Source: Blastocladiella emersonii ATCC 22665
Taxonomy: Eukaryota; Fungi; Blastocladiomycota
Assembly: GCA_025594325.1 (NCBI GenBank)
Contig: JANHCV010000002.1
Location: 2,480,001 to 2,544,000 of the forward strand
Length of the DNA stretch: 64,000 nt
Direction of reading: 5' to 3'
Below are positions 22,880 to 43,738 of the stretch, in pieces. The first letter of the stretch is position 1. Each line of letters begins with the position of its first letter. The notes beneath the pieces were generated by a model. It searched no databases. It had not been told where the DNA came from and saw only the letters and a list, made by a program, of their open reading frames with translations. The translations under genes were made by a program, and so were the position numbers.

Positions 22880-25800
22880 ATGTCTATGACCTCGTTCACG
22901 CTGGGCCCGGCGCCCTTCTCGACGCGCACCTTCGTGCGGCGGCCGGGCGTCGGCAAGGTCGGCACGCCCGTCAAGGTGCTGGCCAACCACTACGCGCTGT
23001 CGCTCATCGACAACATCACCGTGTTCCACTACGACGTGGTCGTGACGCCCGAGCCGACCAAGTCGCTCGCGCGCAAGGTGTGGGCCGAGTGGGAGACGCA
23101 GCACGGCGCCAAGCTCGGCATCACGGCCGCGTACGACGGCGTCAAGAACGTCTTCGTGCCCAAGCAGCTGCCGCAGGACACCATGACCTTCACGGTCGCG
23201 CTGCCCGCCACGGCCGAGGGCAAGCGCGCCAAGGAGTTCAAGATGACGCTCAAGCTCGCGTCGTCCATCAACCGTGCGTTTCGCGATTTCGCCGTGAGTG
23301 CATGCGCGCGCTGATCACCGCTCACATCACACACTAGTCTCGGAGCTCTCCTCGTTCCTCGACAAGCGCACCTCGCTCTCCAACAACGTCCTGACCTCGA
23401 TCATGGCCCTCGACGTCGTGTTCCGCCAGACCCCGCTGCAGCGCATGCTGGTACGCGTTCCCGCGCCCGCGTTCGCGCGGTCTCGCCTCATCCATCATCC
23501 ACGCGTGTCTCACCCACCCCTCCCCGTCTAGCCCGCCGGCCGCTCCTTCTTCGACCCCAAGTCGCGCCCCTTCGACCTCGGCGGCGGCCTCAACCTGCTG
23601 TCGGGCCTGTTCATGTCGGTGCGCCCGGGCGTCGGCACCATGACCCTCAACACGGACACGGCCTACACGGCCTTCTACAAGCCGATCCGCATGGTCGATT
23701 TCGCCCGCGAACTCCTCGGCCGCGCCTTCCCGCCCGCCAGCCAGGAGCTCTCGCCGCGCGACCTCGTCCGCCTCGAGAAGATGGTCCGCCTGCTCGTCGT
23801 CACGGCCACCCACCGCGGCGCCCTCAACCCGCGGTTCCGCGTCCTCAAGCTCACCCGCACCTCGGCCAACAACACCAAGTTCACCCTGTCGCCCAACGCA
23901 CCGCCGCCCGAGCCCGAGGGCATCGAGCACGAGGAGGGCACCGTGCCCGCCAAGGGCAGCGCCAAGGGTGCGGGCAAGGGCGGCGCCAAGGGTGGGGCCC
24001 CCGCCAAGGGCGCCGCTGGTGCTGGTGCTGGTGCTGCCGCCGCCCCGCCGCAGTCGGCCGGCGGCAAGAAGGGCGCCAAGGGTGCCGGTGCTGCAGCCGG
24101 CGGCGGCGTCGGCGCGGCCGCGGCGGGCATCGCGCGCATGACGGTCGGCGGCAAGCCGCGCGAGGTGACCGTGTTGGCGTACATGAGCGAGACGTACCAG
24201 ATCAAGCTGCAGTTCCCGAACCTGCCGTGCCTCGTGGTCGGCACGCCGCAGCGGCAGACGTACCTGCCCATGGAGCTGGCCATCATCGACGACGGGCAAA
24301 AGTACCGCGGCAAGCTGACCGAGGACCAGACGTCCAACGTGATCAAGGTCGCGGCCAAGAAGCCGCTCGAGCGCATGGCGCAGCTCAAGCAGCTCATCGC
24401 GACCACGGCCAACATGGGCGGCGACCCGTACCTCAAGGCGTTCGGCGTCAAGGTGTGGCCCGACCTCATGGCGATCCAGGGCCGGTTCCTGTCGACGCCC
24501 AAGCTGCAGATTGGCGGCAACAAGACGACGGTGCCGCGCGACGGCGCGTGGAACTTCACCAACGCGCGCGTCACGCAGGGCGCGCGCATCTCGGCCGTGG
24601 GCGTGGTCAGCTTCGCCGACCCGCGGTACCTGCCCGAGGACCGCGTCGAGGAGAAGATGGACGAGCTGTTCGACATGTGCGAGTCCATGGGCCTCGCCTT
24701 CAACCCGAACAAGAAGACCAAGACCCAGTACCCGATCCGCACCGCGCGGGCCGGCCGCGGCGGGTTCGGGCCCGAGGCCATCAAGGCCGCCATGGACGAG
24801 ATCTACCGCGAGACCGAGGCCACGTTCGGCCAGCGGCCCGACCTCATCGTCGTGATCCTGCCGCGCAAGGAGACCCCGCTGTACGCCGAGGTCAAGCGCG
24901 TCGGCGACATTGAGCTCGGGTGCCCGACCCAGTGCCTCGTCCAGGCCAAGATCGACCGCGCCAACGGCCAGTACTGGGCCAACGTGGTCCTCAAGATCAA
25001 CGTCAAGGTGCTCGGCACGGGCGCCGCCGCCCCGAACACGACCAACTTTGCCCTAGCCCAGTCCAAGTATTTCGGCACCGATTCGGTGATGCTCATCGGC
25101 GCCGACGTGTCGCACCCGGCGCCCGGCGCCGGCCACGCGTCGCTCGCGTCCATGGTCGCCTCCATGGACCCCAAGTGCGCGGGCCGGTACTCGGCCGAGG
25201 TGCGGGCGCAGCCGTCGCGCCAGGAGGAGATTGCCGACGTGCGCGGCATGTTCGCGGCGCTGCTGCGGCGGTACCACACGGCCAACAACAAGACGTTCCC
25301 CAAGAAGATAGTCTTCTACCGCGACGGCGTGTCCGAGGGCCAGTTCGACATTGTGCTCAAGGGCGAGCTCGAGGGCATCCGGTCGGTGCTCAAGAAGGCG
25401 GGCGCCTACGACCAGACGCGCATCACCTTCGTCACGGTGCAGAAGCGCCACCACACGCGCTTCTTCGCCACCAACCCGAGCGACAACGACCGGTCGGGCA
25501 ACCTCAAGGCCGGGCTCGTCGTCGACACGGGCGTCACGCACCCGACCGACTTTGACTTTTTCCTGCAGTCGCAGGCCGGGCTCCAGGGCACGTCGCGCCC
25601 GACGCGCTACGTGGTCCTGCATGACGAGAACATCTGGACCGCCGACGACCTGCAGCTCTTCACGTACCACCTGTGCTACACATACGCCCGGTGCACGCGG
25701 TCCGTCAGCGTCGCGCCGCCCGCCTACTACGCGCACCTCGTCTCGTTCCGCTCCCGCCACCACCTCCTGTCGACCGAGACCGGGTCCGACACGGCGTCCG

Positions 25801-25892
25801 TGTCCACGTCGCGCTCCGGCGAAAAGGACTCGCCCGCCGCCGAGCTCGCCAAGGTCCACGCTAACCTCACCGCGTCCATGTACTACATGTGA
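22880..25892 (+). CDS. AGO: Eukaryotic Argonaute (N-L1-PAZ-L2-MID-PIWI) with an intact DEDH tetrad
   Basis: Three exons (introns about 23274-23337 and 23451-23531). Motifs KVLANHY, YLPMEL, KRVGDIELGCPTQC, KINVK, IGADVSHP (D), RQEEI (E), FYRDGVSEGQF (D), VQKRHHTRFF, GTSRPTRY, RCTRSVSVAPPAYYAHLVS (H) and C-terminal MYYM. Confidence 0.97.
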
Positions 25893-26365: not shown

Positions 26366-29300
26366 ATGCACTCTTGGCAGACTACGCGCTCAACAACGTC
26401 CACGCCGCACGCCGGATCCTCGCTCGTCGGTCACGGGCCGCAGCGACGTGTTCGAGCGGCCGTGGCGGGAGTGACGAGCGACGATGCGCCGAGCCACGCG
26501 ACGCGTGCTGCATCGGCGCCCGTCGTACACGGCGTGGTCCCCTTCGTCACGCGTTTCGTCGTCGATCCGCGGCTCAGCCACGGCGGACCGGCTGCTTCGT
26601 CCGATGGTCATCAACCGCGCGAGCAGTCTTCGCGGCAAAGCACGCGCGGCGGCGGCGGCGGCGACCTCGAACAGTTCGCGGTCTCGCGCCTGTACCCCCT
26701 GTGGCGCCTTCGTCGCGTCATCGTGGCCATGACAGCCGGGTTCGTCGTCCTACTGCTCGGCGTGGGTGCGTGTTCCTGCGGGCCCGCATCGGGCATGGAA
26801 CTGACGCTTTGCCGCGACCGACCAGCGCTTGGCACCGTCCTCTTCGTATGGTTCCGCAGCGTGGAGCACAACTACGCCCACGCCGAGGTCCAGCGACGGT
26901 GCGGGTCGCTGGCCGACGCGCTCAAGCTCGACTTTGACACGAACCTCAACACCTACGTACTGTCGAAACTTTCGCTTGGTCGCGCCGACGGTACATGCTC
27001 TGACCATCGTTTGTGCGTAGCTCATTGACTTTGCAGGGTACATGGCCACGGCCGGCGCGATGACGAATGGTGCGTGTGATTCGGCTCCTGCTTTCGTTCC
27101 TTTCGACTGACGCGAATCGCCTCGGATATGCAGCGACCATGGACACGTTCGCGCGCAACGCGTCCAGCCAGTCGGATCGACTCTTCGCCGTGCAGCTCGG
27201 CCCGCTCGTGCCGGCTCCCGACTCGGACGCTTACCGTCGTCGCTTCCACCTTCCGATCGTGCAGCCTCCACCTTCCGCGCTCATGCTCACTTCGATCCCC
27301 ATCACCTTGCGGCTCGGGTACGTTCTCACTCGTAAGGTGCCACCTCCCGTTGCACTGACGTAATCGATTCTCCAGCATCGACGCATCCCGCCCCTTCTTC
27401 TTCCCGGCCGGCTTCGATCTACAAGCTCCAAGCGAGTTCTCGCGTGCGGTTCTCGACGCTCTCAGTTCGACACACGCTGTGCTTGCTTTCCAGGATCTGC
27501 CCGACTCGCTGGTCCCGGACCCGCGCGAGCGGATCTACATCTTCGCGGGCATCCGGAACGCCGTCGACCCGGACTTCAGCATGTGGGTCCTCGTGGCCTC
27601 GGTCAAATCACAGTCCATCTTTGCCAGCGATTTCTCCCGCGTCACGGTCGGCGAGCTGACCGTCGAGCTGCACGACCAGGACACGGCGCTGCTTCTCTAC
27701 TCGGTCGTCAACGCGAGCCCGACGCTGGGCGACCCGGTGCGCGTCGCCATACACATTGTCGACCGCACCTGGGTCGTGTCGTGCACCAGCACCGCGGCGC
27801 ACCGCGCGTCGTTTGCGACGCCGTGGCCGGTCGTGCTTCTCGTTCTCGTTCTCGCGATCGCATCGGTGGCCGCCGAGCTCGTGCGCCGCGGCCTCCTTCG
27901 CCTGCTCACAGCGCGCAGCGTCGAGCACCACGTCCAGCAGCAGGCCGCGCTTGTCCGGGCCATACGCCACTACTCGACCGGGATCCTGCGCGCCGTCCGC
28001 GACCCGCTGATCGCACTCGACGGCCACGGGTACATTGTCGGTCTCAACGACGCTGCATTCGAAAAGCTCGGGCTCGCGGGCGAGCCTGGGCTTGGCCGCG
28101 CCCATGTCCGTGGCGTCGTTCATACTGTGGCCTCGCCGTTGACGACCCTCGCGCCCGGGACCTACGAGGTTGGCCCGGTCGGCCATCCCGACCGCTCGTT
28201 CTTTGCCGAGGTGACCGCGTCCGAGGTCACCAGCAGCAAGCGCGACGAGCTCGCGCAGGTCCTGATCCTGCACGACGTGTCCGAGCGGATCTGGCTGCTC
28301 GACGAGAACCAGGACACCGAGGCCGCGGCCAACCGCGCAAGCGGGATCAAGGAGCATCTGCTTCATGGTGTCGCTCACGACCTCGCTGCAACGGCCCAGC
28401 TTGTCACTCAGCTTTTTGCACGCTTCTCGCTTGTCGATCCGCCGCCTCCAGGCGCTGCTCGCGCCCGAACCTCGTCCCACTTGCTGTCAACCTTTGCCGC
28501 GTTTGTTGACGAGCTCCTCGCCGAGGGCCAGCCCGAATGCAGCAACGCAGACCGCTTGACTTGTCCTGCCGACCTACACGCGATGCTCGACAGCTCGATT
28601 GAGTTGTGCCGCGACCGCATTGACTCGCTCGGCCTTCGTGTGCAAGCGTGGATTCATGGCGGCGCCCACGACTTTGACGGGTGCAGCTGCACCCTTCGCC
28701 GCGCTGTCAACATCGCCACCTTCGTTGCCGTCTACGGCGCTCGACCTGGCTCGGCCATCGATCTCGAACTCGGATTCGCCGCGTCGACGGCCACGGCCGC
28801 GTCCACGGTGTGGTTTTGCGCGCGCGGCTCGAGCAGCATCCCGTTCCCGCGCTCCGAACTCTTCACTCATCCTGAACCCCCTCGTGATCGATACGCCGAC
28901 CCTGATGCGCGCCTCGCTCGGTTCCTCGCGGACACGCTGAGCCTCGCCCTCACCACCCTCGGCGCGCTCTTGCAGTCGTCGGGCGGGAGTATCCTCCAGT
29001 TTGACCATCCGGACCGAAGGGGGATCAACTTCGTGCTGCCTCTCCAGCGCCGGCCCGGGTGCGATCGAACACGGCCTCCTCGTGGCCTTGGCGCAGATGT
29101 GCCTGACGGCGAGTCAGTCAGCTCGAGCAGGCCAAAGTGCCGCCGCAGTCGGACAACAACGAGCACGCCGCCACCGCCACCGCCAGCAGGTGTACGCGAC
29201 TACCCCGCTGCTCCTGCCGCTGAGGGCAACCATCCCTCAGTGCGCCTCGGCCAGTTCGGTGATAGTGGTACCGGTGCGCGGTCCAGTCTCGACGAGCGCA

Positions 29301-29467
29301 TCGCGTCCGGGTCCCAGCACGCCGGCGCTGCTGATGCCGACCTGAACGGCAATGCGCCACCCGGCGAGCGCGAACGGTGTGTCGAGGCCGGGCTCAACAC
29401 GTCCCTGGCCAAACCGCTCGAAAGGCCCGTGCTTTGTGAAGTGCGCGTCGAGATGGGGTCGCTTTGA
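26366..29467 (+). CDS. CHASE-PAS hybrid histidine-kinase-like membrane receptor with degenerate HisKA/HATPase/receiver domains
   Basis: Several short introns in 26766-27375; internal exon junctions are approximate. TM1, then CHASE-like TMDTFAR...VQLGPLV...AGFDL...RAVLDA...IVDRTWVVSC, then TM2 and PAS (GILRAVRDPLIALDGHGYIVGLNDAA...ILHDVSER). HisKA-like KEHLLHGVAHDL and a receiver remnant LNGNA...ERERCVEAGLNTSLAKP follow. Confidence 0.72.
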
Positions 29468-29709
29468 TGAAGGGCGGAGAAAACCGCGAATGTATGCCGT
29501 AACTTGTTTTCGTCTCCCTTCTGCAAGGCCGCCGTGGTTGTGGACCGCGAGGCCGTGGACCTCGCCCGCGCGTTCGTGGCCGGGCAGTCTCGCAAGCTTT
29601 AAATTCGAGGTTGGCGAGTGACTGTGGCACACGCGAGCGATTGGATCGCCGACGAACGCGAAAAATGTGGCCGCCGCGTGTGCGTGCGCGTGTGTGCGTG
29701 CCTGACACA

Positions 29710-29724
29710 CTGAAACGCGACGCG
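29710..29724 (+). promoter_or_regulatory. Shared 15-mer CTGAAACGCGACGCG, copy 1
   Basis: Exact copy, about 530 nt upstream of the 30257 ATG. Function is inferred only. Confidence 0.45.
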
Positions 29725-30256
29725 TCCCGGCACGATTGGCGGCGCCTCGCTCTCGACGGCAACTACTCTCCTGCGACGAAAAGTGCAAGAGCTCCGAGTC
29801 TCGGCAGTCGCTATTTCCTTTAGGGTCGAGCAGCGAGCGAACTGACCGTGGTTCGCGCATCGGCGAGTCTGATGGCCAGGTCGCGGCGGCGGCAGTGCCA
29901 TACCACGCAGTTTCCGACTGCGAATCGAGGGGGCGAAATCTCGCCTATATGACGCGAATGGCACATGGCGTGATGGGGTGTGTGATGCCGAGGCTGTTGA
30001 GTGTGTGTCACGTGTGTTTTTGATACAGGATCGAATTTGAGCCGTTCTCTCGGAACGTTCTCACGCGCGGTGCTCGCTTGGGGTCACTCCCTGGATTGAG
30101 GCCCGGTCCCTGGGCGTGCGCGTGCGTCTGTGAGCCTGCATCGGGCGCATCGCATCGCATTGAGGATCAGGGGACGCGCTCTCAAAAGCCGGTCCCGCCC
30201 CCCTGTGTTCCGTTCCCTCGCTCTCAACCCAACACTTCGACGAAACACTAGCAACT

Positions 30257-31090
30257 ATGTTCAACCCTGACGTGCCGCCACCCGCGATCGACGACCCGAC
30301 CGGCCTCACGCTCCCAACCTACAACGAGACCGAGGGCGTCGCCGTGGTCGTATCGCTGTCGGGGAGCGACCAACTGTGCATCACGGGGCTCGACGGCAAG
30401 CACGACGTCGAGGCCGTCGAGTCGGTGCTCCGGACCGTCTGGACGCGCGGCATCTACCGGTTCAAGCGCGCGAGCCGGCCGCTGACGTCCGACGCGGTGA
30501 GCGGCCTGACGACGCTCGACTGCACGTACACGCTGCGCGGCAACCCGTGGTCGGGGACGGGCGAGGAGGCCGTCGAGTCGCGCGCGCTGGTCGCGGCCCT
30601 GTTCCGCGTGCTGCTCGAGCGTGGGTGGCGCTTGTACCTGGCGACGGATGTGAGCAGCGGGCCGCGCGACAAGGACAGCTGGATCTTCCTGCGCGCGCGG
30701 CCCATCGTGTTCGCGGACCCGAGCGACGTGTTCGTGGTCTCGTTCAACAAGGCCGACCGGATCCGCCTGATCGGCGCGCCCGCGGGCGTCGCGGCGATCG
30801 TCGCGGGCGCGGTGCCCGAGTACTGGCGCAAGGGCGTCGAGGGCGTCCGCGACGCAAAGGGCGGGCGCGCCGTCGAGGTCAAACTCGGCGGACATCCGTG
30901 GTACGCGCGCGCCACGGGCGACGTCATGACTTCCAACATGATGCTCGCGCACCTCCTCGCGCGGCTGCGGAACCACGGGTTCACCGTGTACGCAGCGCTC
31001 GACATGTCCCACAACGTCGAGGGCCGCGGCGAGTGCGACAGCTGGGTCGTCGTGCGCGGGCTGCCCGACGGGTACCGGCTCGGCGCCTAG
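30257..31090 (+). CDS. Uncharacterised protein made of two tandem copies of an alpha/beta repeat
   Basis: Intronless and strongly codon-biased. Unit 1 is SLSGSDQLC...VW.RGI...LRGNPW...GWRL...DVS...DKDSWIF; unit 2 is SFNKADRIR...YW.KGV...LGGHPW...GFTV...DMS...ECDSWVV. Confidence 0.85.
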   Translation: MFNPDVPPPAIDDPTGLTLPTYNETEGVAVVVSLSGSDQLCITGLDGKHDVEAVESVLRTVWTRGIYRFKRASRPLTSDAVSGLTTLDCTYTLRGNPWSGTGEEAVESRALVAALFRVLLERGWRLYLATDVSSGPRDKDSWIFLRARPIVFADPSDVFVVSFNKADRIRLIGAPAGVAAIVAGAVPEYWRKGVEGVRDAKGGRAVEVKLGGHPWYARATGDVMTSNMMLAHLLARLRNHGFTVYAALDMSHNVEGRGECDSWVVVRGLPDGYRLGA

Positions 31091-31925
31091 CGGAAGCGGA
31101 TTCCACGACTGAGGACCAGCTGTGCTTACTCCGGCGGGATTAAGTCGGTTGAGAGCCTACTGAGCTCGTTGCATAAAGTTGCAAGAAGAAATACATTTTA
31201 TTCGTCACGACGGCGAGCGCGAGGGCGAAAACGCGGGTGGTTCTCGGCCACGTGTTATCCCGACGCGTCTCGCACGGCGAGCCGCGACGCCACGAAGCCA
31301 GCGCACGCGTTGCAACCACGTCAGTTTGCGATCTGGTATCGCTTTCCTGCTTGTCCCCTCCGTCAGCGATGCCGGCTGGGCCAGAACATGCGATCGTGGC
31401 CGCCGCGGAAAGTCTCGAGTCCGTTGGGGGCGCGCGGCTGGGAGACACGTCCTTGATCCCGCACCGTTGCTGCGCCGCCGTCCATATTCATGAATGTTCG
31501 CCTCCAACGGCAAGTTGACTGACATTGTAAGCGTTTTGAGACGCGGGTTTCATTCATCCACGAGCGCGGAGAAGGGTGGTTCGCGGCCAAGAAGCCCTGA
31601 TCAAGAGAGCGCGTGGTGGTCAGGGCCACGGTCCTGGCCATCAACCGACCAGCCTGTGAACCGACCAGTGGGTCGCCGAGGGAGGCAATCAGGCGGAAAG
31701 GAGACTGCTGGAAGGAAACAAGCGGCGCGGGTTCCGCAGCTCGCGGGATGGGAGACAAAAAGTCCGTCGATGGCGATGGCGCGCCCTTCTTCGCGCTGCT
31801 CCGGCCCTCAAACCGCGTTCGTCCCCAGACTGGTCATCCGGCGATCCACGATACATTATCGCTCCCCCTAGTCCTACTCCAGCCTCCCGTGCATCGATCC
31901 ACGCTTTTGCAACGCAAACAACATC

Positions 31926-33063
31926 ATGGGACTGACGGAGGTTGTTCTTGCGACTTGTCCGCCGCCGATGCACGAGACTCACATCTACTCCACACGCAAC
32001 AGGAGGTGTTTCTGTGGAGCCCGGCAAGCTTTCTTGCGGGCATGTCGTTTCTCGTCTACGGGCTCGCCCTGTACACGAGCAGCTCGCTGTTTGTGCGGAC
32101 CCGCACCAAGTACTATGCGGTGCTGTCCGGGCTGGCCATTGGCCGCATCTTCATCGCCGCCTGCCTGCTGGCCTCCCTCGCGTCGCCTGGAGGGGTCCCG
32201 ATCGAGCTCACGCGCTTCTCGAGTGTTGTCGAGGGGACGTACGGCGTCACGTTTATCTCCCTCAACGCGCTCCGGATGTACCGAACGTGCTACTTGAAGC
32301 ACAAACGCCCGGTGCAGGTACTCCTCACGCTCACGGGTATCACGCTGACGATGCAAGTCATCGCGACCATCTGGTTCCTTGTCGCCACGTGGAACACCTA
32401 CGACATGTACGACGGACCGGCGATTGACTTCTACCTGGGTGCGACCGCATGATTCTGATGTTCGACGGACGGTGACTGACGCGCCCATCGCTCCGAACCG
32501 TCTAGCCTGGAGCATTACCGACGCGGCGGTCAACTCGGTCATCTCCCTCTTCTTCGTCTACTTCCTGCGTCAACTCGCTGTTGCCCCGACCGGCATCGCG
32601 TCGATGCGCAGCGAAATGGTCGATTTGATTCGGCACATCCAGGTCATCCTGGTCGGCGAGGTGTCGCTGGCCCTCTTCGCGTCGATCGGGCGGCTGGCGG
32701 ACCCGAAATTTGATCCGAGCTGGTACAGCGTTATTCTGGCGGACGCGGTCCGCCTGCGCACTTTCAGCAGGTACGACCCAACCTTCTTCCGATCATTGTG
32801 CCCCCTATGCTGACCTGCGCGGCGAATGTAGCTTCCTGAGCGGCCTCAACCGCGTCATGAAGCGTGAGGTTCGAGGCAACGTGCGGGCCAGCACGACCGG
32901 TTCCATTGCTTCGGGTACCGGCTCACGCCTGTCAAAGACTACGACAAACCGGTCGTCCCCGCTTCGGGCTCAAAGGTCATTGCGTCGCGCCCTGTCGAGA
33001 GCTCGCACTGCGGCAACTCGTAGCGCGCGGAGATCTCGCCTGACTGCTTCGCTGATTGAATGA
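31926..33063 (+). CDS. Orphan seven-transmembrane (GPCR-like) protein, copy 1
   Basis: Introns 32439-32505 and 32771-32831 join seven hydrophobic segments (VFLWSPASFLAG... through DPSWYSVILADAVRL) and a basic Ser/Thr-rich tail. The start codon and first exon are uncertain. Confidence 0.7.
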
Positions 33064-33140
33064 TATGCCACAGTGGAGCTGGTTTGTGCATCAATATCGG
33101 TATAGATGCCGCTTTCAATGGTTGTTCGGATGAGCTGAAC

Positions 33141-33155
33141 CTGAAACGCGACGCG
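33141..33155 (+). promoter_or_regulatory. Shared 15-mer CTGAAACGCGACGCG, copy 2
   Basis: Exact copy, upstream of the F-box-like fragment and 7TM copy 2. Confidence 0.45.
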
Positions 33156-33391
33156 CCTCTCAATTCCGCGTGACTGGCATCATAATAAGTACCCCAGTTC
33201 ACGATCAAACGCGTTCATCCATCACCGCACGCCTCGGGGATCAGTGTATGCAAGCCCTGTGTGGCAATGAGACTCACCTGAGCTGCATCCATACGTGCGG
33301 TGCAGGTGTATGCCCACCCCGCGTTTGCTCTTCCTTTCTTCCGCCTGCCGCCGCTCTCAACAATGCAGCGTCGTGTACCCATGTTACTACC

Positions 33392-33799
33392 ATGAAGCTT
33401 CCACGTTTACCGATTGAGCTTGTCGAGGCAAGACTTGTCCTCGCTTACCGTGATGCAACCCGTGATGCCCGCCCCATCCACTTCTACTGTCATTGTCTCT
33501 TGATTTTGCAGCCTTGTGGCAGATTTTCTGTCGCTGACGTCCAAAGTTACGTTGCCTCATGCTGCACCAAGCTCGCGCACCGCATGGACGCCGTTGCCGA
33601 GCTGCGCGAGTACCTGAACGTTATACCCGGACTTGATCGCATTCGCCGATTGCTGTTCAACGAACTGCCCGGAGCGTCACTCATGCACGCCTTCGTCGAC
33701 GATCGCGTGGTCATGTCGGGCCTTACGACTTCGCCTTGCTACTTTGATGAGCGAGCGCTACTCAGCAACTATTTCAATGGAGCCCCGCAAGCTTCTTGA
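33392..33799 (+). pseudogene. Possible F-box-like gene fragment overlapping the start of 7TM copy 2 in another frame
   Basis: MKLPRLPIELVEARLVLAY resembles an F-box start (LP.EL). The ORF is short and weakly codon-biased. Confidence 0.22.
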
Positions 33800-34557
33800 C
33801 GGGCATCATCGGCGTCATCTACTTTCTTGCGCTATACACGAGCGTCAACCTCTTTGTCCGGACGCGCTCGATCTACTACGCGGTGCCGGCGAGTGTCGCC
33901 GCTGGGCGCATGTTCATTCTCGGATGCACCGTCGTCTTTCAGACTTTTCCGATTTCGGGTAAAGACTTCCCGGCTGAGCTCAGCCGCTTCATCAGCTGTG
34001 TTGAGCTGGCGTGCGGCGTGACATTCATCGCGCTCAACGCGCGGCGACTGTATAAGACATGCTACTCGCGGTACAAGCGACTCGTCCAGGTTCTCGTCGC
34101 AGGCGCTGTCGTCGCCGCGGCACTCCAGGTGCTGAGTTCGGGCTGGTTTCTCGCTGCGACGTGGAACGGCTTCATGGAATCCGATCTTGCAGTCGCCAAC
34201 ACGCTCTATTTCGGTCCGTCGCTCTCGTTTCTCGCCGGTTCGAGGCCTCAACTCATCACGTGTACTCGTTCTGTAGCGTGGAGCTGCGTCGACGCAGTGG
34301 TGAATAGCGGAATCTCGATCACCTTCGTCGAGTTCCTGCGCGACCTGAGCATCGCGCCGGCGGGCGGCATGACGATGCGCGGCGAGATGGCCGGGCTGAT
34401 CCAGCGTGTCCAAGCGCTTCTCGTCGCGTAAACGGTACTGATCCTGTCAGCCTCCGTCTTCCACCTCGTCGAGTCAACCCTGGACCCGTTGTGGTACAGC
34501 GTCCGCTTTGCGGACGCGTTCCGGCTCCGCGTCTTCTCATCGCTCACACCGGGGTAA
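33766..34557 (+). pseudogene. Orphan 7TM protein, copy 2, with an in-frame premature TAA
   Basis: Collinear with copy 1 (LFQWSPASFLTG...LALYTS..LFVRTR..YYAV) and shares its intron position (34214-34276). TAA at 34429-34431 aligns with a Glu of copy 1, and homology continues in frame past it (LDPLWYSVRFADAFRLRVFS). No in-frame ATG lies directly upstream. Confidence 0.7.
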
Positions 34558-34845
34558 CATCGGAAGGTAGTGTCGCTTCGTGTCTTCGGCCTGCGGAAAT
34601 GCTAAGCACTGCATGTGAACATACTGGACATTTGTTCAACGAACGACGGAGGAGCGATGTAGTCCAGATCGGTAAACGCATCTAAGCGCCAAGGATCGCG
34701 CGACGTGGGTGGACACGAAGCGGGCCGTGTCTGCTCACACGATTCTCGAATAGACTTTGAAGATATGCGCGATTAAGCACGCGGTTCCACTTCGCACGAG
34801 AGCAGAACGCAACCGAGGCGGTCAAGGGCCTGTCTTCGACGGCAC

Positions 34846-34860
34846 CTGAAACGCGACGCG
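34846..34860 (+). promoter_or_regulatory. Shared 15-mer CTGAAACGCGACGCG, copy 3
   Basis: Exact copy, about 620 nt upstream of the Ssk1-like copy A start. Confidence 0.45.
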
Positions 34861-35481
34861 TCCGACTCGCCACGGCAGCGGGCGCGACTCCTGCGCCACT
34901 TCGACCAGGGGTGCCTCGACTAGACGGATCCATGCTCCAGCTCGAAAATGTTGCGCCCACGACGCGTCGCGATATCATGTGAGCGGCGCGTGAGACGCGA
35001 GACGCGGGTTCCCGGCACTCTCAGTTACCCGAACCGGCAAGCCCGGCCACGAGGGCGAAAAAGCAACGCGTAGGCAGCCGCCGCCAATCGCTCCCACCAC
35101 CCCGCGCAGCGCGTTCGCCGCGAGCCACGTCACGCAACATGGAGCAACGAAACGCGAAACGCAAGAGTCGATGGTGCTAGCGCCCGGCGCAGCAGCAGGG
35201 CACATGACGCGCGGTCCCCATCGTGGCCAGCTTGAGTGACGCGACCGATGGGCATCACCGGCGCCCCTGGCCACGCGCATCCGGTGTACGCGCGTGGGTC
35301 TGCCGGGTGGGAACTGCTGCCCGGGAGACAGCGCACGGGAGGGCGTTGCTGCGCGAAGCGGCGCCGGTTCCGAGCAAGCGAGGGAATGGCAATCACGGCC
35401 GCCGCCGCCGCCGCTCTCGCAGACCAACCGGCCCACGCGCACCGCCTTCGCCGTCCTGACCGCAACGTACATACCGCCCGA

Positions 35482-38400
35482 ATGAAGAACCCGCCCGAGC
35501 CGCCGCGCGCGACCGCAATCCCTCCCGCGCCTGCCGCCACTGCCAGCGCGCCCGAGCCATCGCCCACTGCGATCCACAGTGTGGCCGGCGCGGCGCTCGA
35601 TCGCCTCGAGTCGCTCCTGACCGCAGTGCACAGCGCCCCGCCTGCGCCGCACGCGTGGCCCGCGCTGCACCTGCTGCTGCTCGAGCACACGGCCACGGCG
35701 CGCGCCGCGCTTGCCCTGCTGGGCGCGCCCGAGCCCGACCCCGAACCCAGGTCGCCGCCGCACGTCCCCGGATCAGGCGCGGAATCCGCCGAGCTGTTCG
35801 ACCTGGTCGCCGTCCTCGACACGACCGCGCACCTCGCCGCCGAAGTGGCGCGCGCGCGCAGCATCGCCGTGCACGTCGACACCCCCGCGCACGCCGTCGC
35901 CATGCACGTCCGCGGCCCGCGCGACACGGCGACGTGGGGCCTGCTCGACGCCCTGCTGCGGTGCGTTGCCGCCGTCGGCGCGGGCGGCCGCGTCGACATG
36001 TCGTGCTCGTGCATGCCCGGCCGCCCGCACGCACACCCGAGGCTGCACCTCGACTGCTGCCCGACGGTCCGCTTCGTCGCGTCGCCCGTCGACCCGGCCC
36101 AGCTCGGGCCCGACTGCCTCGTCCTGCCGCGTTGTACGACGTTCCTGCAGACTCACCCGATCCCGGACTGCGTCGCGACCCGCGCGGCGCACACGCACAT
36201 GCTGCAGCTCGACGTTGTTCTAGACGTCGTGCCCACGGCCGCCGCACGAGACCCCGCGTGCGCGCTCGTGTCCCCACCGCCCTCGCCGTGGGCCGCCGAG
36301 CTCGACCGGTTCGCGCAACGCCTCGAGGGGTTCCCCGTCGGCGTCGTCGCGCGGTCCGACGACGTGGACCTGCGCCGCCAGCTCGCCATCCTCGGACCGG
36401 ACCTCGTCCCGCTCGACGACCTGCACCGGTTCCCGCGCCTCGTCGTCGTCGCGCTCCCGCCCGCGGCGCTCGGCCTGCTCCTCGCTGCCGTCGATCAGCT
36501 GCCGCATCACCAGCCCGTCGGGATCCTCGCCATCACCACGTCGCCGGCCGAGACCCGCGAGGTGCTGGCGCTCCTTCACGGCCGCGACCGCGTCACCTCG
36601 CCCGAGCCCGCCGTTGTCGCCGTGCACCTCGCCGAGCGCCCGCTCGGCTCCCGCTCGCTGCTCGGCCACCTGCACCACCTCGTCACCATCCTCCACTCGG
36701 CTCCCGCCGCGACCCCCGACTCGCTGTCGGTCTCGAGCTCTCGCGTCGACTACTCGGCGACGCCAGCGCGCCCGGGCATTCCGCAGAGCGGCGGCGGCCG
36801 GCCGTCCTCGCCGCGCCCGCCGCCGCTCGCGTTCGTGCCGGGCCAGCTGCCGCTCGCGTTCCCGTACAGCCTCGAGCTCGAGTGGCCGCGCTTCATCTGC
36901 TGGATCGAGGCCAAGGCCACCGACGGGTCGCTGCTCGACGTCGACTTTTCCGACGGCCAGACCCCGCTGTTCACCGCGACCTCGCACAACAACCCGCCGT
37001 TTCGCGCGTTCGTCGCTGACCTCGCCGCCGCGGCCCAGGCGTACGTGTCGGCGTCGGACCCGCTGGTCGAAGTCGAGCCCGCCGCCGAGCTGTTGCTTCC
37101 CGATCCAGCGATGGTCGTCCTCGACGTGCCCACGACCGCGGAACCGGTCACGTCGGCGTCCCTCGGCTCGGCGCGCTGCCCGCGGTCGCTCTCGGCCGAC
37201 ACGCTGCTGTTCGTCAATGCGCCGCAGCGGCCGCCGATGCGCCCGCGGGCGGGGAGCGACAAGGCGGCGGCGGTCGCGGCGGCGTGTCTCGCCGCGCAGG
37301 CCGGGTGCCGCCCGCTGCCCAAGTGGCAGCCGATCATGAAGAACCTGTGTGTTCTCGTTATTGACGGTACGCTTACTCGCGTATTCTACCCCGCGGTTCA
37401 CGGCACTCACACCTTATTTTGCACCCGTAGACGATGCCAGTTCCTCATCGAGCCTGACCGCCTTCCTGACCGAATGCGGCGTCGCGTGGGATCTCGCGGC
37501 CAACGCCGAGGACGCCTACGCCATGGTGACGCAACAGGCCGCCGCCGCGACCACCTCGTCCTCGCGCCCCGCAGACTCGCCGCCGTACCACCTCATCTTC
37601 GTGAGCCTCGACCTCGGGTTCGGCAGCCGCGCCCATGCGCGCACCCGCACCGCCCCGTCGCCGCTCGACCTGATCCGGTGGATCCGCGCCGACGAGTACC
37701 GCCGCCGCACGTCGACGCTCGCGCGGTCGCGGTCGTCGGCGATCGGCGCCGCTGCCGCCGCCGGCGCGGCGGAGGTGAGTGCCGCGGTCTTCACGGACGT
37801 CTGGCTCCGCGACCGCGGTCGCGCTGGCGTCGGCAACCCGCGCGCGGGCGACGCACACGCCGACGCCGGCATGTTCCACGCGCTGACCGCGTCGCAGCTG
37901 GCGCACCACGGCACGCCCGCGCTGATCGTCGGCATGGCGGCCGACGTCCCCGCGCCGGTCCCTGCCTCCGCCGCCGGAGGTGACGGCGAGCTGCCAGCAC
38001 CCGGTTCTGCGGGCGACGAGCCCGTCCCACCGTACCAGGCCGCGCTGACCGCCGGATGTAACGCGGTCGCGCCGCGGCCCGTCCCGCGCGCGTGGGCCGA
38101 GACCAAGCTCGCCGAGACGTGCGCGATCCTGACGCTGCTCGATCTCGCGCACGTCGCTCCCGCGGCGGCGGCCGAGAGTGGTGGTGCTAGCGCGGCCGCG
38201 TCGATGCGGTTCTCGGACACGGTGGCCACCGCGGCGCAGCCGATCGCGGTCCCGATGCCGCCGACGCTCGTCGGCCGCGACGGCGTACCCGAGGCTCACG
38301 GCGCGGCGGCGATCGTGGTTGCGGGGATGGAGGACGGGAAGGTGGGTTACAACGGACATCACCGCGGCGAGGTCCGTGACAGCAGCAGTGGCAAGGCGCC

Positions 38401-38491
38401 CGTGCGTGAGCGGCTGGACCGCTCGCGGCCTGCGCGCGCGCCGCGCAGCCGGTCGCTGTCGCCGACGGCGCTCGTGGCTCGTGTCGTTTGA
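35482..38491 (+). CDS. Ssk1/Mcs4-like response regulator, copy A, with a pseudo-receiver (Asp to Ser)
   Basis: Intron 37367-37430. Kinase-remnant N-terminus (FDLVAVLD...ARSIAVHV, FPYSLE), then receiver KNLCVLVIDDDA...YHLIFVSLDL...IRWIR...ALIVGMAA...AGCNAVAPRPV. The tail WAETKLAETCAILTLLDL resembles Ssk1 WLEKKI.EWGCMQALID. The start codon is inferred. Confidence 0.72.
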
Positions 38492-38826
38492 GATTTCTGC
38501 TGTGTCCAGATATTGAGTGAGCGGGGCATGAGTTCCAATATACCATGCGAGATTCCTGATCCAGCGGTGTTTGTTGGAGAGGGACGGCACGGCGGCGAAA
38601 GGTGGGTTCCTCGAAGTACCCACGAAGTTGCTTTGATCGATTTCACAGATGTTTTTCCAAGTGAGAAGCCCAAGCGGGATCAAGTCGACCACGCGGGGGA
38701 CCGGTCCCGATCACGTGCGGATGATCGCCGCGTCGCGCGGCACGCGGTGCAAGCGCGGGACGATTTCGCGGCCACCGATTTCAGACTCTCGAAGTGACTG
38801 CAGCGAATCAGAATGGGCAATCTATA

Positions 38827-39483
38827 TCACTCTTGCGGCGGAACCATCACTGCCGAATCACGCCGCTGCTGGGCGACCTCCTTGGCGCGCTGCTGGTAGT
38901 GGGCGCGGACCTCGTCCGACTCCTGGCGCCACTGCTCGGAGATGACCTTGGTGAGCTCGCGGCGCTTCGGGAGCGTGTGTTTGAGCGCCTCCTGGCGGTC
39001 CTTCATGTAGAGGAAGAAGGAGTTGGGCGGGCGCCGCGGCGCGCCGGGTGTTGCGACAGCTGATGCGGGGTCGGCGAGCGGGTCGACCGGCCATGAAGCC
39101 GCGGCGGGACCCAACACGTCATGGCCGCTTCGGCGGGACCGGTTGCCGGCGCGCTTCTTCGGCGGCCGCTGGTTCAGCAGCTGCCTCTGTTGCTGCTCCT
39201 GCTCGAGGAGGAGCGCGTGGCCCGCGTCGAGGTCGCAGGTGAGGGCGGGCGCGAGCTGGAGGTGCACGTTCTGGACCGGGGTGTCCATTGGGTACGGCGA
39301 GGTCGGCGGAAGCAAGAGGCCGGCGGCGTCCATGTCGGCGGGCTCCGGGACGTGCAGGAAGTGGCTGAAGTGGACCGCGCTCGGGTCCGTGATCGGGATC
39401 ACGGCATACATGTGCCCGTTCGAGTCGACGATGAGCTCGGGCGGCGGGAAGGACGGGATCAGGGTGTCGTTTGCGTGGGACAT
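38827..39483 (-). CDS. Single HMG-box (MATA/SOX-type) transcription factor
   Basis: PRRPPNSFFLYMKDRQ...ELTKVISEQWRQESDEVRAHYQQRA at the C-terminus of a Pro/Gln-rich protein. Confidence 0.85.
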   Translation of the reverse strand: MSHANDTLIPSFPPPELIVDSNGHMYAVIPITDPSAVHFSHFLHVPEPADMDAAGLLLPPTSPYPMDTPVQNVHLQLAPALTCDLDAGHALLLEQEQQQRQLLNQRPPKKRAGNRSRRSGHDVLGPAAASWPVDPLADPASAVATPGAPRRPPNSFFLYMKDRQEALKHTLPKRRELTKVISEQWRQESDEVRAHYQQRAKEVAQQRRDSAVMVPPQE

Positions 39484-40399
39484 GGTTCTGACTTGGCGAG
39501 TGATGGCGAGGGCGGCCAAAGTCCGTGGACCGTCAGCGAACCGTTTTGGTCGGCGTCATGGTCGCCGTCGTCCTCGTCGACGCATCGTTGCAGCGAATTC
39601 GAGTCCATCGGCAGCGGTAGTCAAGGGCGTCGAGTGTCAAAGGGCGACGTCAAAGAGCTGCAAATCGGAGCAGGTTCAGGAGAAAGGGCCCAGGAGAACG
39701 ATCGGCGCGCGGTGTGTGGCGCCGTCACGTGCGGATAAGCGGCGCCACAGCCACGCGGTGCGGCGCAGCTCGGGGAAGCAGGCCAGCCCAAGTGCTCCAT
39801 CCGGGCGCGCGGAGCACGCGGTGCGGGACCGTGGGAATCAGGGGGCGAGCAACCGCGCGTGGGCGACACGTCACCGGCGCGTCATGCCACGCCACGCGTT
39901 GCGGCGGCGGGCGGCAGCCGGTGGCCCGCAGGCGCGCCCGCCCGCGATAGCAATCTATGCACGCTGACGCGTTCGCCGCTACGCCGCTACGCCGCCCACC
40001 GGGCACCCATGGAGCACGCGCAAACGCGCACGCACGGCGCAGCCGCCTGGCCGGGGGCGCAGCGGCGGAATGACGCGGCCGTGACGCGCGCTGAGCTGCC
40101 GCGACGCGCGCCGATTCAACCGGCCCGCGAGCATTCAGGGCGCCCCCAAGCAGGCAGCCTGGCGGTAGAGGCCCAAGGGGCCGTTGGGGCGGTGGCGGCG
40201 GCGGCAGGCGGGGCGCGCAGCTAAAGGCGGCCGAGACACGGCGGCGGGACGGAGCAGGGCATCTGAGACCGCGGCGCCCGCGACCCCCGCTCCCGCGTCG
40301 CACTGCAACCGGCCCCGGCTCGGACAAGCGTCACCGTCATCCTCGGCCCCGTCGCCTCCGCCATCGCCACGCTCGTCGCGCGCCCATCGTACGCCCGCA

Positions 40400-43300
40400 A
40401 TGCTCCACCCTCCTCGCCCGGCCCCCGCCGCCGCCATGCCGCGCGTCGCCGGATCACCGCCACCAACAACAGCGGCCGCCGCCGCCGTCGCCGTGCCTTC
40501 CGCAGCGAGCACGAGCGCTGCCGCCGCCACCATGCCGCCCGGCTGCAGCACTCTGCGCAGCGTGGCACTCGCGGCGCTCGGCCGCCTCGAGTCGCTCCTC
40601 GCCGCGGTGCACCGGACGCCGCCCGCGCCGCACGCGTGGTCGGCACTGCACCTGGTGCTGCTCGAGCACGCCGCCACGGCGCGCGTCGCCCTCGCCCTGC
40701 TGCGCGCACCCGAACCCGGGCCCGTGTCGCCGCCATCCGGGGCCACCATGGCCGCGGCCACCGACGGCGCCCGGTCTCACGACCACGAGACCAACGAGCC
40801 GTTCGACCTGGCGGATGCCATCGAGACGGCCGCGCACCTCGCATCCTCGGCGGCCCACGCCCGCGCCGTCGCCGTCCACGTCAACACGCCGTCGCACGCG
40901 ACGCCCGCCGCCGTCTACGGGTCGCGCGCCGCAGCGACGCGGTGTCTCGCCGACGCCCTCGTGCGGTGCGTGGCCGCCGTCGCGCCGGGCGGCCGCGTCG
41001 ACATGTCGTGCTCGTGCGCGGCCCCGGACCACCACGGCCCGGCCTCGGCCCCGACCGTCATAAGACTCGTCGCGTCGCCCGTGGACCCCGCGGCCCTCGA
41101 TCCCGCAACCTTTGCCCTGTCCGACGCCCGGTCTCACCACCTCCTGACCCACCCGGTCGCGCACGGGCACCCCGCCGCGGACGGCGTCCGCCACACGCAC
41201 ATGCTGCAGCTCGACGTGACGCTCGCCGTCGCGCCGACGTGCGCCAACGGGCCCGCCCCGGTGTCCGCGACCTGGACCCTCGAGGTCGCCGCGTTCGCGC
41301 CGCTGCTGCGCGAGTTCCCGCTCGGCGTGCTTGCGCGGTCCGACGATGCGGACCTGCGCCGCCAGCTCGCGGCCCTCGGCCCGGCGCTCGTCCCGCTCGA
41401 CGACCTCGGCAGCTTCCCGCGCCTGATCGCCGTCGCGCTCCCGCCCACGGCCCTGAAGCTGTTCCTCGCGGCCGTCGACCGCCTGCACCACCGCGTCCCC
41501 GTCGGCGTCCTCGCCATCACCGCGTCGCCCGCCGAGACGCGCGAGGCTGTCGCCGTTGTGCACGGGCGCACGCGGTCCGCGTCTCCCGATCTCGCGCTGC
41601 CGTCGCTCGTGGTGGTGCATCTCGCGGAGCGCCCGCTCGGCCCACGGTCGCTGCTCGCGCACCTGGTCCACCTCGTCGCGACGCTGCGCGGCGCCGCGGC
41701 CCCGCCTTCCCCATCGCCATCGTCGCCGACCTCGTTCTCGACAACCCCCGCGGCCTCGGAGCCCGCCAACCCGCTCGACCGCACCTCGTCCGTGTCGTCG
41801 CTGCCGCCCGCGCTCCTGTTCCCGCACCAGCAGCTGTCCCCGCCGGTGCCCACGCTGCCGTCGTCGCCCGCCGCTTCGAACGGCGCCGCCGACTACTTTC
41901 TGCCGGGCGTGTGGGTCGGCGACCTCGCCACGGCCGCGCGCCCGGGGGTCCCGCAGGGTGGCGGCGGCCGGCCGTCGAGTCCGCGCCCGCCCCCGCTCTC
42001 GTTTGTCCCCGGCCAGCTCCCGCTCGCGTTCCCGTACAGCCTCGAGCTCGAGTGGCCGCGGCTCGTGCACTGGCTCGAGGCCAGGGCGGCCGACGAGTCG
42101 CTCGATTTCGAGGAGGTCGTCGACGAGGATGAGGAGGACGCGCGGCTTCTCGCGCTCACGGCCCACGACACGCCGCCGTTCCGCGCGTTCGTCGCCGACC
42201 TCGCGGCGGCGGCGGCGGCGCAGCGGGACGCGAACGACGCGCTCGTCGAGGACGAGCTCGATTCTTCGATTTCACCACCGCCCGCTGGCGCGGTGCTCGA
42301 CCCGGCCCTTGTCGCCCTCGACGCGTCTTCGGCCTGCACCATGCCGGCCGCGGCCGCCCCGCTGGCGCTCATCGGGTCGCCGCGGTGCCCGCTGTCGCTC
42401 CTGTCCGACCCGCAGGTCGTGGACTCCGTGCAGCAGCAGCGGTCGCCCCCGCGCTCGCGGTCGGGTAGCGCCAAAGCGGCCGCGGCGCTCGCTGCTGCCG
42501 GCGTCACGGCGGCCATCGCGTGCCCCTCGCTCCAGGCGCGGTGCCGCCCGCTGCCCAAGTGGCAGCCGATTATGAAGAACCTGTGTGTGCTCGTCGTTGA
42601 CGGTACGGTCTCTCGTTCTTACCTCGTCGACGGACCAGAGACTCACGTTGTATGCGCGCGCTTAGACGACCCCGTCACCTCATCGAGCCTGACGGCGCTG
42701 CTGTCCGAGTGGGGCGTCGCGTGGGACCTGGCGACCAACGCCGACGACGCCTTCGCCATGGCCACGCAGTCGACCTCGTCCTCGCGCCCCGCCGACTCGC
42801 CGTACCACCTCATCTTCATGAGCCTCGACCTCGGCCTCGGCTCCCGCGCCGCCGCGGCCGCCGTGTCCCCGCTCGACCTGATCCGGTGGATCCGGTCCGA
42901 CGAGTACCGCCGCCGCACGTCGACGCTGATGCGCACGCGGTCGTCGACCATCTCGGCCGCCGCCGCCGCGGCCGCAGCCGCAGCGGCCATCATGGACGCG
43001 CGCCTGCGCGACGGCCACAGCGACCGCGGCGCGTCGGCCGACTCGAGCGACGACGACTCCGCGGGGGTCCCGCCAGCGGCGCCCGCGACGTACCTCGCGC
43101 GCCACGGCACGCCGACGCTGATCATTGGCATGTCGTCGCGCGCGCCCGCCGCCACACCGTCGTCGGGCAAATCCACCACCACACCACGCGGCAGCGACCA
43201 CATCGACCCGCCGTGCCCCGCGGCGCTCAACGCCGGGTGCAACGCCGTGTGCCCGCGGCCCGTCCCGCGCGCGTGGGCCGAGGACAAGTTGAGCGAGACG

Positions 43301-43738
43301 TGTGCGATCCTCGCGCTGCTCAACCTCGCGCACGGGCCCGTCGCCACCGCCTCTGCCAACATGTCCGCGTCGATGCGGTTCTCGGACACGATCGCGCCCG
43401 CGACGGTCCCGACCCCCGTCCCGCTGCCGCCGACGCTCGTGGGCCGCGACGGCGTGCCCGAAGCCCACGGGGCGGCCGCGCTCGTCGTCGCGGCGATGGC
43501 GGGCGAGCCGGCGGCGGCCGACGGCGCGAGCAAGTCGGGCCGCGGGCCGCACGCGCGCTCGCACCATGTGCACGTCCAGTCGAACCCGGCAGCGGCGGAC
43601 GACGAGGTGGGCGACGTGCGGCGGCGGCAACACGCGCGCAGGCGGTGGTTCGCGCCACGGCAGCAGCAGCAGAAGCGGCGGTCGGCGCGGCGAACGCGGT
43701 CGCTCTCCCCGTCGGCGCTGGTCGCGCGCGCGATCTGA
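40400..43738 (+). CDS. Ssk1/Mcs4-like response regulator, copy B, with a pseudo-receiver (Asp to Ser)
   Basis: Paralog of copy A with the same intron position (42603-42665). Reads KNLCVLVVDDDPV...YHLIFMSLDL...TLIIGMSS...AGCNAVCPRPV...WAEDKLSETCAILALLNL. Confidence 0.75.
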   Translation: MLHPPRPAPAAAMPRVAGSPPPTTAAAAAVAVPSAASTSAAAATMPPGCSTLRSVALAALGRLESLLAAVHRTPPAPHAWSALHLVLLEHAATARVALALLRAPEPGPVSPPSGATMAAATDGARSHDHETNEPFDLADAIETAAHLASSAAHARAVAVHVNTPSHATPAAVYGSRAAATRCLADALVRCVAAVAPGGRVDMSCSCAAPDHHGPASAPTVIRLVASPVDPAALDPATFALSDARSHHLLTHPVAHGHPAADGVRHTHMLQLDVTLAVAPTCANGPAPVSATWTLEVAAFAPLLREFPLGVLARSDDADLRRQLAALGPALVPLDDLGSFPRLIAVALPPTALKLFLAAVDRLHHRVPVGVLAITASPAETREAVAVVHGRTRSASPDLALPSLVVVHLAERPLGPRSLLAHLVHLVATLRGAAAPPSPSPSSPTSFSTTPAASEPANPLDRTSSVSSLPPALLFPHQQLSPPVPTLPSSPAASNGAADYFLPGVWVGDLATAARPGVPQGGGGRPSSPRPPPLSFVPGQLPLAFPYSLELEWPRLVHWLEARAADESLDFEEVVDEDEEDARLLALTAHDTPPFRAFVADLAAAAAAQRDANDALVEDELDSSISPPPAGAVLDPALVALDASSACTMPAAAAPLALIGSPRCPLSLLSDPQVVDSVQQQRSPPRSRSGSAKAAAALAAAGVTAAIACPSLQARCRPLPKWQPIMKNLCVLVVDGTVSRSYLVDGPETHVVCARLDDPVTSSSLTALLSEWGVAWDLATNADDAFAMATQSTSSSRPADSPYHLIFMSLDLGLGSRAAAAAVSPLDLIRWIRSDEYRRRTSTLMRTRSSTISAAAAAAAAAAAIMDARLRDGHSDRGASADSSDDDSAGVPPAAPATYLARHGTPTLIIGMSSRAPAATPSSGKSTTTPRGSDHIDPPCPAALNAGCNAVCPRPVPRAWAEDKLSETCAILALLNLAHGPVATASANMSASMRFSDTIAPATVPTPVPLPPTLVGRDGVPEAHGAAALVVAAMAGEPAAADGASKSGRGPHARSHHVHVQSNPAAADDEVGDVRRRQHARRRWFAPRQQQQKRRSARRTRSLSPSALVARAI

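Follow-up and report, generated by a model that had tools for sequence, protein, structure and literature searches.

Two Ssk1-type pseudo-response regulators within a probable island of duplicated signalling genes in Blastocladiella emersonii

A block of seven genes, A to G, occupies positions 26.4-43.7 kb of a 64,000-nucleotide stretch of the Blastocladiella emersonii ATCC 22665 genome (C11:2480001-2544000; "the window" denotes this whole stretch), where the NCBI locus tags of the block genes run from H9P43_002747 to H9P43_002752. Sequence comparison and structural modeling suggest that the block is probably an island of duplicated signalling genes in which two members, E and G, encode Ssk1-type pseudo-response regulators that would act as phosphorelay-independent Ssk1 mimics; the island as a whole does not amount to one demonstrated system. 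E and G represent a conserved Asp-less Ssk1-type pair for which no earlier description was found, and the literature searched yielded no report of a fungal Ssk1-derived pseudo-receiver.

E and G flank gene F (Table 1) and are paralogues sharing 61-66% amino acid (aa) identity. Each contains one intron at the same codon (64 nt in E; 63 nt and in-frame in G), with the 5' splice site GTACG and the branch site CTCAC, and the receiver start VLV(V/I)DDD of both proteins arises by splicing. The spliced models are identical to the NCBI proteins throughout. Pfam detects the two receivers weakly (E-values of 0.001-0.26), with scores under the gathering threshold. Homologue searches of spliced genes used single exons or database proteins, joined exon models being reserved for the ratio of nonsynonymous to synonymous substitution (dN/dS, or omega), and word-based searches with G, A, and D matched B. 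emersonii's own proteins only. When 1.84 billion representatives were searched exhaustively with a profile, only five proteins emerged: E and G themselves, a third B. emersonii fragment (H9P43_005807), a B. britannica protein (1.5e-10), and a fragment from Kickxella alabastrina named "response regulator" (4.8e-5), which is the sole match outside Blastocladiella. The Kickxella fragment in turn matches the yeast Ssk1 receiver 5kbx_B at 1.4e-36, compared with about 1e-11 for other receivers.

Profile-profile alignment with hhalign points the same way: when E, G, and the B. britannica protein are compared with canonical Ssk1s (two from B. emersonii plus the Kickxella sequence), the N-terminal half of the receiver aligns at 1.2e-18 and the C-terminal half, including the Ssk1-type last helix, at 1.9e-8. 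In an AlphaFold2 (AF2) model of G residues 672-915, five strands and helices follow one another as in the canonical (beta-alpha)5 fold, with a predicted local distance difference test score (pLDDT) of 80-89 in the core; Foldseek places this model closest to yeast Ssk1 (5kbx_B) among 147 PDB receiver matches at E<=0.001. Because the profile search, the Kickxella link, hhalign, and the AF2/Foldseek results agree, E and G are judged to be true Ssk1 relatives, nearer to Ssk1 than to other receivers, and the term "Ssk1-like" used in the original prediction holds for them. An alternative view of their N-terminus as a degenerate DHp, CA, and pseudo-receiver series is unsupported: AF2 models residues 1-400 with a mean pLDDT of 47, the region has no Foldseek or Pfam match, and hhalign against canonical Ssk1 N-termini gives 0.039.

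The canonical sequences for comparison come from two Ssk1 genes elsewhere in the genome, which are about 67% identical, share a long conserved N-terminal region, and have Asp, Thr, and Lys all present. Aligned with them, the E/G receiver appears unable to take a phosphate on the canonical Asp. At the acceptor position, the LMDLQL of canonical B. emersonii Ssk1 (Asp) corresponds to FMSLDL in G and in the third B. emersonii copy (Ser), FVSLDL in E (Ser), and LLNLRL in B. britannica (Asn). In strand 4, the canonical ALTAS (Thr) corresponds to GMSS in G (Ser) and GMAA in E (Ala), and in strand 5 the canonical SKPV (Lys) corresponds to PRPV in both G and E (Arg); B. britannica keeps the Thr and the Lys. 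The acidic pocket is present in all aligned sequences; in E and G, the metal-binding pair after strand 1 reads VDDD or IDDD once the conserved intron is removed. Through these Asp-to-Ser and Lys-to-Arg changes, together with the Ssk1 kinship obtained by several methods, the predicted pair of non-phosphorylatable Ssk1-like regulators is well supported. The locus of the third copy contains one TGA in the six-frame match and sits between ABC-transporter genes.

E and the B. britannica protein also have the family-specific middle domain in common (39% identity over 104 aa, 7e-12). Common descent of the Asp loss in B. emersonii and B. britannica is likely, as judged from these alignments. A single clade would have lost the Asp before the species split and then undergone quicker receiver decay in B. 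emersonii; the presumed order is Asp to Asn to Ser, a path of two single-base steps.

E and G are full-length genes under purifying selection. Between the two genes, Nei-Gojobori (NG86) omega is 0.52 overall (bootstrap 0.44-0.62) and codon-frequency maximum-likelihood (ML) omega is 0.11, values that are subject to the codon bias considered below. By segment, omega ranges from 0.35 to 0.42 in the folded or motif-rich parts and reaches 0.96 in the receiver insert. Intron and flanking DNA of E and G have near-random identity (51-62%), compared with 80-93% in the adjoining exons, and third-codon GC (GC3) is about 0.93 in both genes. Coding frames in this genome stand out sharply by GC3 (0.85-1.0), and long spurious open reading frames (ORFs) are frequent. 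Linear motifs fully conserved between E and G lie amid variable regions (33 and 470-560 of protein G), namely GGGRPSSPRPPPL-FVPGQLPLAFPYSLELEWPR, PPTLVGRDGVPEAHGAAA, and SLSP-ALVAR, and may be docking sites, judging from their conservation.

These data bear on the possibility that all two-component-derived genes of the block, E and G included, are dead relics whose frames stay open as stops are rare at 68% GC. Decay is indeed seen in A and D, spurious long ORFs are widespread in the genome, and Pfam barely sees the E/G receivers, all of which such a scenario would accommodate. It is nevertheless very unlikely for E and G, where omega is far under 1 and differs between domains and loops, GC3 is upheld, the splice sites and the place of the intron have been kept despite a randomised intron sequence, the linear motifs are invariant, and the B. 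britannica homologue retains both middle domain and receiver. The alternative of decaying signalling duplicates that accompanied the original prediction thus fits A and D and does not fit E and G. Likewise, the statement that reading frames stay open after splicing is correct for E and G and fails for D, which has a TAA at 34429; the dN/dS comparison is well under 1 for E/G, and D has the same omega on both sides of its stop.

The original prediction united the block as one co-regulated "pseudo-phosphorelay" module, in which A and C/D sense, E/G transmit by conformation, and F provides the output. Six of the seven genes had been listed as signalling-type; the list is largely right, and comes down to four independent families when each set of tandem duplicates is treated as one. 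Physical clustering of these four families is in keeping with such a module, as is the lower GC and GC3 throughout the block, which sets it apart from its flanks. An identical 15-mer, CTGAAACGCGACGCG, was a further argument, and three exact copies do occur within 5.2 kb, all in gene orientation (Table 1). Its specificity for the block did not hold up: the genome contains 84 exact copies, with 0 for the reversed control. Within the block it lies upstream of B, the broken D, and E only, with no copy ahead of A, C, F, or G, so that a disrupted gene is among its three supposed targets. At its genome-wide copies, a CACGTG about 10 nt upstream, or more ACGCG repeats downstream, is frequent. The 15-mer cannot support a block-specific regulon. 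Its interpretation as a mobile-element end or part of a longer repeat was ruled out by unrelated flanks, and that of a fixed-distance promoter element of strongly coding genes was rejected after 40 sampled sites gave no consistent orientation or distance to high-GC3 ORFs.

Gene neighbourhoods are also unfavourable to a single module. Microsynteny with related fungi, which had been proposed as a check, gave for B. britannica no shared neighbours on the downstream side of the one available contig, where the homologue is followed by phosphoglucomutase and M17 peptidase genes. A tblastn search for paralogues of B, C, and F found none next to either canonical Ssk1 or the third copy, nor any on the contig from B. 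britannica, and no neighbour is common to the other Ssk1-type loci. Origin of the block by segmental duplication of a canonical Ssk1 locus was rejected on the same observation, as no B, C, or F paralogue lies near the canonical Ssk1s or the third copy. Additional copies of every signalling family tested (A, C/D, E/G, and F) are present at other sites in the genome, most of them in tandem arrays. With A lacking most of its receiver and showing relaxed constraint in its 3' half, and with C/D qualifying only as putative receptors, the single-module reading is distinctly improbable; its core inference of co-regulated signalling without His-Asp transfer finds no support, given a generic 15-mer, paralogues elsewhere, and no shared neighbours.

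A smaller unit comprising E, F, and G could still be imagined, in which the Asp-less Ssk1 pair and the HMG gene form a developmental switch, for example a mitogen-activated protein kinase (MAPK)-linked regulator with its transcription factor. F is flanked by the two paralogues, a divergent intergenic region of about 1 kb is common to F and G, all three genes combine high GC3 with open frames, and the RPPNSFFLY of F is like that of sequence-specific MATA/SOX boxes. This arrangement is unlikely to be a unit, however, in that the contig 16 paralogue of F is not beside any Ssk1-type gene and no HMG gene occurs in the 5.4 kb that follow the homologue in B. britannica. A broader proposal, about as doubtful as the single module, takes the Asp-less Ssk1 paralogues as a genus-wide, relay-independent input to the Blastocladiella MAPK cascade for stress or development; with F and perhaps the membrane proteins, they would make up a circuit devoted to one transition of the life cycle. 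Such a circuit, which may act in zoospore germination or sporulation, for instance, is a trimmed version of the module reading.

Several observations weigh against the preferred reading of an island of duplicates with maintained Ssk1 mimics. Four signalling-type families inside 17 kb constitute a local enrichment, and three 15-mer copies within 5.2 kb contrast with an average of one per about 390 kb. The B. britannica contig is 7.9 kb long with the gene at its edge, and synteny was therefore judged on its downstream side only. In its receiver, the B. britannica protein comes closer to canonical Ssk1 than to E/G, and only its middle domain groups with E/G. Finally, at a GC3 of about 0.93, the NG86 omega is an overestimate and the ML dS approaches saturation.

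Gene A is, on alignment evidence, a further-eroded copy of a kinase-dead CHASE/PAS receptor family. Its long ORF (27479-29467) encodes a transmembrane (TM) segment and a PAS fold (PAS 4e-5), and its receiver is reduced to the last ~35 residues, the strand 4 to helix 5 part (E-value of 0.024 against 7c1j, a hybrid-kinase receiver). A is 46-49% identical to three close paralogues, two of them in tandem on contig 4 and one on contig 15. In these the linker is long and the receiver complete, with Asp, Thr, and Lys; A has lost both the long linker and the complete receiver. Pfam HATPase_c has no match in A or in these three paralogues, and Pfam HisKA has none in A. By alignment, the H-box position is His in A and the contig 15 copy and Arg in both contig 4 copies; the claim that every two-component protein of the block has lost its phosphotransfer residues accordingly stands for E/G and not for A. 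GC3 of A falls from 0.86-0.90 in the sensor and PAS to 0.66-0.78 in the DHp-like and CA-like regions and tail, compared with 0.86-0.99 in the paralogues, and its DHp-like region is 25-27% identical to those of the paralogues, which are 49% identical among themselves.

Pfam CHASE (PF03924) does not match A or its three closest paralogues. The ectodomain of the A subfamily is linked indirectly, by hhalign (E-value of 8.4e-5, probability 60%), to B. emersonii paralogues that are positive for Pfam CHASE. The "CHASE pseudo-kinase" label originally given to A is thus confirmed as to the retained sensor, the PAS, and the eroded transmitter and receiver, and rests on this indirect link for CHASE. A shares its ectodomain, TM, PAS, and CA-like region with the kinase-dead CHASE-PAS hybrid-kinase-like receptors of B. 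emersonii; unlike them, it lacks the complete receiver and the long linker and shows decayed codon bias in the transmitter half. NCBI model H9P43_002747 omits the conserved FPAGFDLQ sensor segment and the H-box region and is probably mis-spliced and in need of revision.

C and D are tandem paralogues with 51% aa identity and two GT..AG intron positions in common. C probably has an additional 5' exon and is open through a Ser/Thr/Arg-rich tail up to its TGA. Its hydrophobic segments comprise five strong and two weak ones, and neither C nor D matches any Pfam family or G-protein-coupled receptor (GPCR) family; of the proposed "orphan 7TM receptors", the multi-pass membrane character is retained and the receptor assignment is putative. 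At least 15 paralogous loci belong to the family, most of them arranged in tandem on contig 16, with large arrays at C16:2251887-2337006 and C16:1723860-1738144. Fungal DUF7703 multi-pass membrane proteins have a language-model feature similarity of 0.90-0.92 to C, which serves as a lead only; C has no Pfam match. In D, NG86 omega is equal before (0.32) and after (0.39) the TAA, and GC3 is lower. Because omega is alike on both sides, the break appears recent, and D is probably a recent pseudogene or truncated copy of C. NCBI model H9P43_002749, which joins C to the 3' part of D (31926-34557), probably needs revision.

B and F are ordinary single genes. B has no Pfam match and an atlas feature similarity of 0.92 to unnamed fungal clusters of ~280-297 aa, again a lead only. 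The HMG factor of the original prediction is confirmed in F, which matches PF00505 HMG_box at 2.6e-11 and PF09011 at 2.4e-11, with HMGB1, an SRY chimera, and TFAM as its best PDB matches. The resemblance of its RPPNSFFLY signature to MATA/SOX boxes is a reading of the sequence, with no tree behind it. A full-length paralogue of F (C16:90611-91050, +) is 60-69% identical in the N-terminal region and box.

Elsewhere in the genome, the canonical Asp-bearing SSK1 and YPD1 suggested for follow-up were located as two Ssk1 genes (Table 1) and one Ypd1 candidate. The latter, the sole Pfam Hpt candidate of the genome (Ypd1-like, GHFLKGS, multi-exon; C15:2572873-2573007), lies at most 0.5 kb from a hybrid-kinase-like gene whose receiver is canonical; the candidate is located on the edge of a CHASE/HisKA/REC array that spans ~27 kb of contig 15 (C15:2573363-2599212). 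The premise that phosphorelay genes are unlinked therefore fails here. Clustering of phosphorelay genes in this genome comes from tandem duplication, a process also reported to have diversified the sensory families surveyed in B. emersonii, namely GPCRs, ion transporters, and nucleotide cyclases (PMC9730499). Genome-wide, no Pfam HATPase_c match at E<=0.1 occurs in CHASE-type kinase-like genes, and HisKA, HATPase_c, and REC are combined at 4 loci only; to judge by these domain searches, the CHASE receptors of B. emersonii seem as a rule to be kinase-dead.

The assembly comprises 21 contigs, as published (PMC9730499), and 32.65 Mb at ~68% GC. GC and GC3 of the block lie below those of the surrounding DNA. 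Both flanks are of housekeeping type, with genes for ThiF-type E1, M1 aminopeptidase, DNAJC11, Gpi16, and Argonaute upstream and for YchF, an SH3 protein, and UCH and M28 peptidases downstream. The Argonaute gene, with Piwi, PAZ, Mid, and linker domains, directly adjoins the block.

Table 1. Positions of the block genes, the 15-mer copies, the adjoining Argonaute gene, and related Ssk1-type loci (window coordinates unless a contig is given)
Feature	Position	Strand	Description
Gene A (H9P43_002747)	26366..29467	+	TM, CHASE-like ectodomain in several exons, TM, PAS, diverged DHp-like region, CA-like region without G-boxes, receiver remnant
Gene B	30257..31090	+	Intronless conserved hypothetical, 277 aa; GC3 0.92-1.0, highest of block
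Gene C	32006..33063 (exons 32006-32438, 32506-32770, 32832-33063; TGA 33061)	+	Multi-pass membrane protein
Gene D	33769..34536	+	Tandem paralogue of C; in-frame TAA 34429-34431, different 3' end
Gene E (H9P43_002750)	35482..38491 (exons 35482-37366, 37431-38491)	+	Putative Ssk1-type pseudo-response regulator, 981 aa; model equals NCBI protein
Gene F	38827..39483	-	HMG-box protein, 218 aa; convergent with E, divergent from G
Gene G (H9P43_002752)	40532..43738 (exons 40532-42602, 42666-43738)	+	Putative Ssk1-type pseudo-response regulator, 1047 aa; model equals NCBI protein
15-mer, copy 1	29710..29724	+	243 nt past stop of A, 547 nt ahead of B ATG
15-mer, copy 2	33141..33155	+	Between C and D
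15-mer, copy 3	34846..34860	+	636 nt ahead of E ATG
Argonaute gene	23613-25892	+	
Canonical Ssk1 no. 1	C11:2463505-2466834	-	~40 kb upstream of block, same contig
Canonical Ssk1 no. 2	contig 19 (L008:3619-7776)	-	Asp, Thr, Lys present
Third partial Ssk1-like copy (H9P43_005807)	C18:1456420-1457564		270 aa in NCBI model; Ser at acceptor

Taken in this setting, the block would be a lineage-specific island between Argonaute and YchF, where members of expanded signalling-type families arrived by duplication and now stand at different stages of their fate, with A eroding, D recently disabled, and E/G retained. Fungal two-component signalling is usually told with three response regulators, Ssk1, Skn7, and Rim15, which need the acceptor Asp or a close variant. 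In yeast and Candida, Ssk2 becomes active when its autoinhibitory domain is bound by unphosphorylated Ssk1, and Ssk1 has a further role as a scaffold for Ssk2-Pbs2 that does not depend on the phosphorelay (PMC11706498). Since it is Ssk1 without phosphate that activates an Ssk2-type MAPK kinase kinase, E and G are most likely phosphorelay-independent Ssk1 mimics, or decoys, in an Ssk2 pathway, by analogy with these systems. They could serve as a constitutive activator or scaffold of a Hog1-type cascade, or as a decoy titrating Ypd1, Ssk2, or canonical Ssk1, and would be controlled by abundance or other modifications rather than by His-Asp transfer.

A duplicated Ssk1 whose copy was kept under selection after loss of the Asp would offer a natural experiment on unphosphorylated Ssk1 as the active form, and E/G could reveal how the output of a phosphorelay is rewired into a phosphorylation-independent regulator. 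For annotation, most CHASE-type "kinases" of B. emersonii have no recognisable ATP-binding domain, and two NCBI models in the block probably need revision.

By profile, profile-profile comparison, and fold, the closest relatives of E and G are Ssk1, Mcs4, and SskA of the fungal HOG phosphorelay (5KBX). Like Ssk1, E and G combine a long insert behind helix 3 of the receiver with an extended last helix (W-x-E-x-K-[IL]-x-E...AL), keep the acidic pocket, and possess a long N-terminal region whose similarity to the canonical Blastocladiella Ssk1s is weak and collinear. Unlike Ssk1, the E/G family carries its own middle domain and co-occurs with two canonical Ssk1 copies in the same genome. Retention of the receiver fold after loss of canonical phosphorylation has precedents in the plant pseudo-response regulators PRR/TOC1, with Glu at the acceptor, and in the atypical receivers FrzS, HP1043, and ChxR. 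E and G resemble these proteins in the fold they keep and the phosphorylation they have lost, presumably acting through protein interaction as well, whereas PRR/TOC1, FrzS, HP1043, and ChxR come from unrelated lineages and have other outputs.

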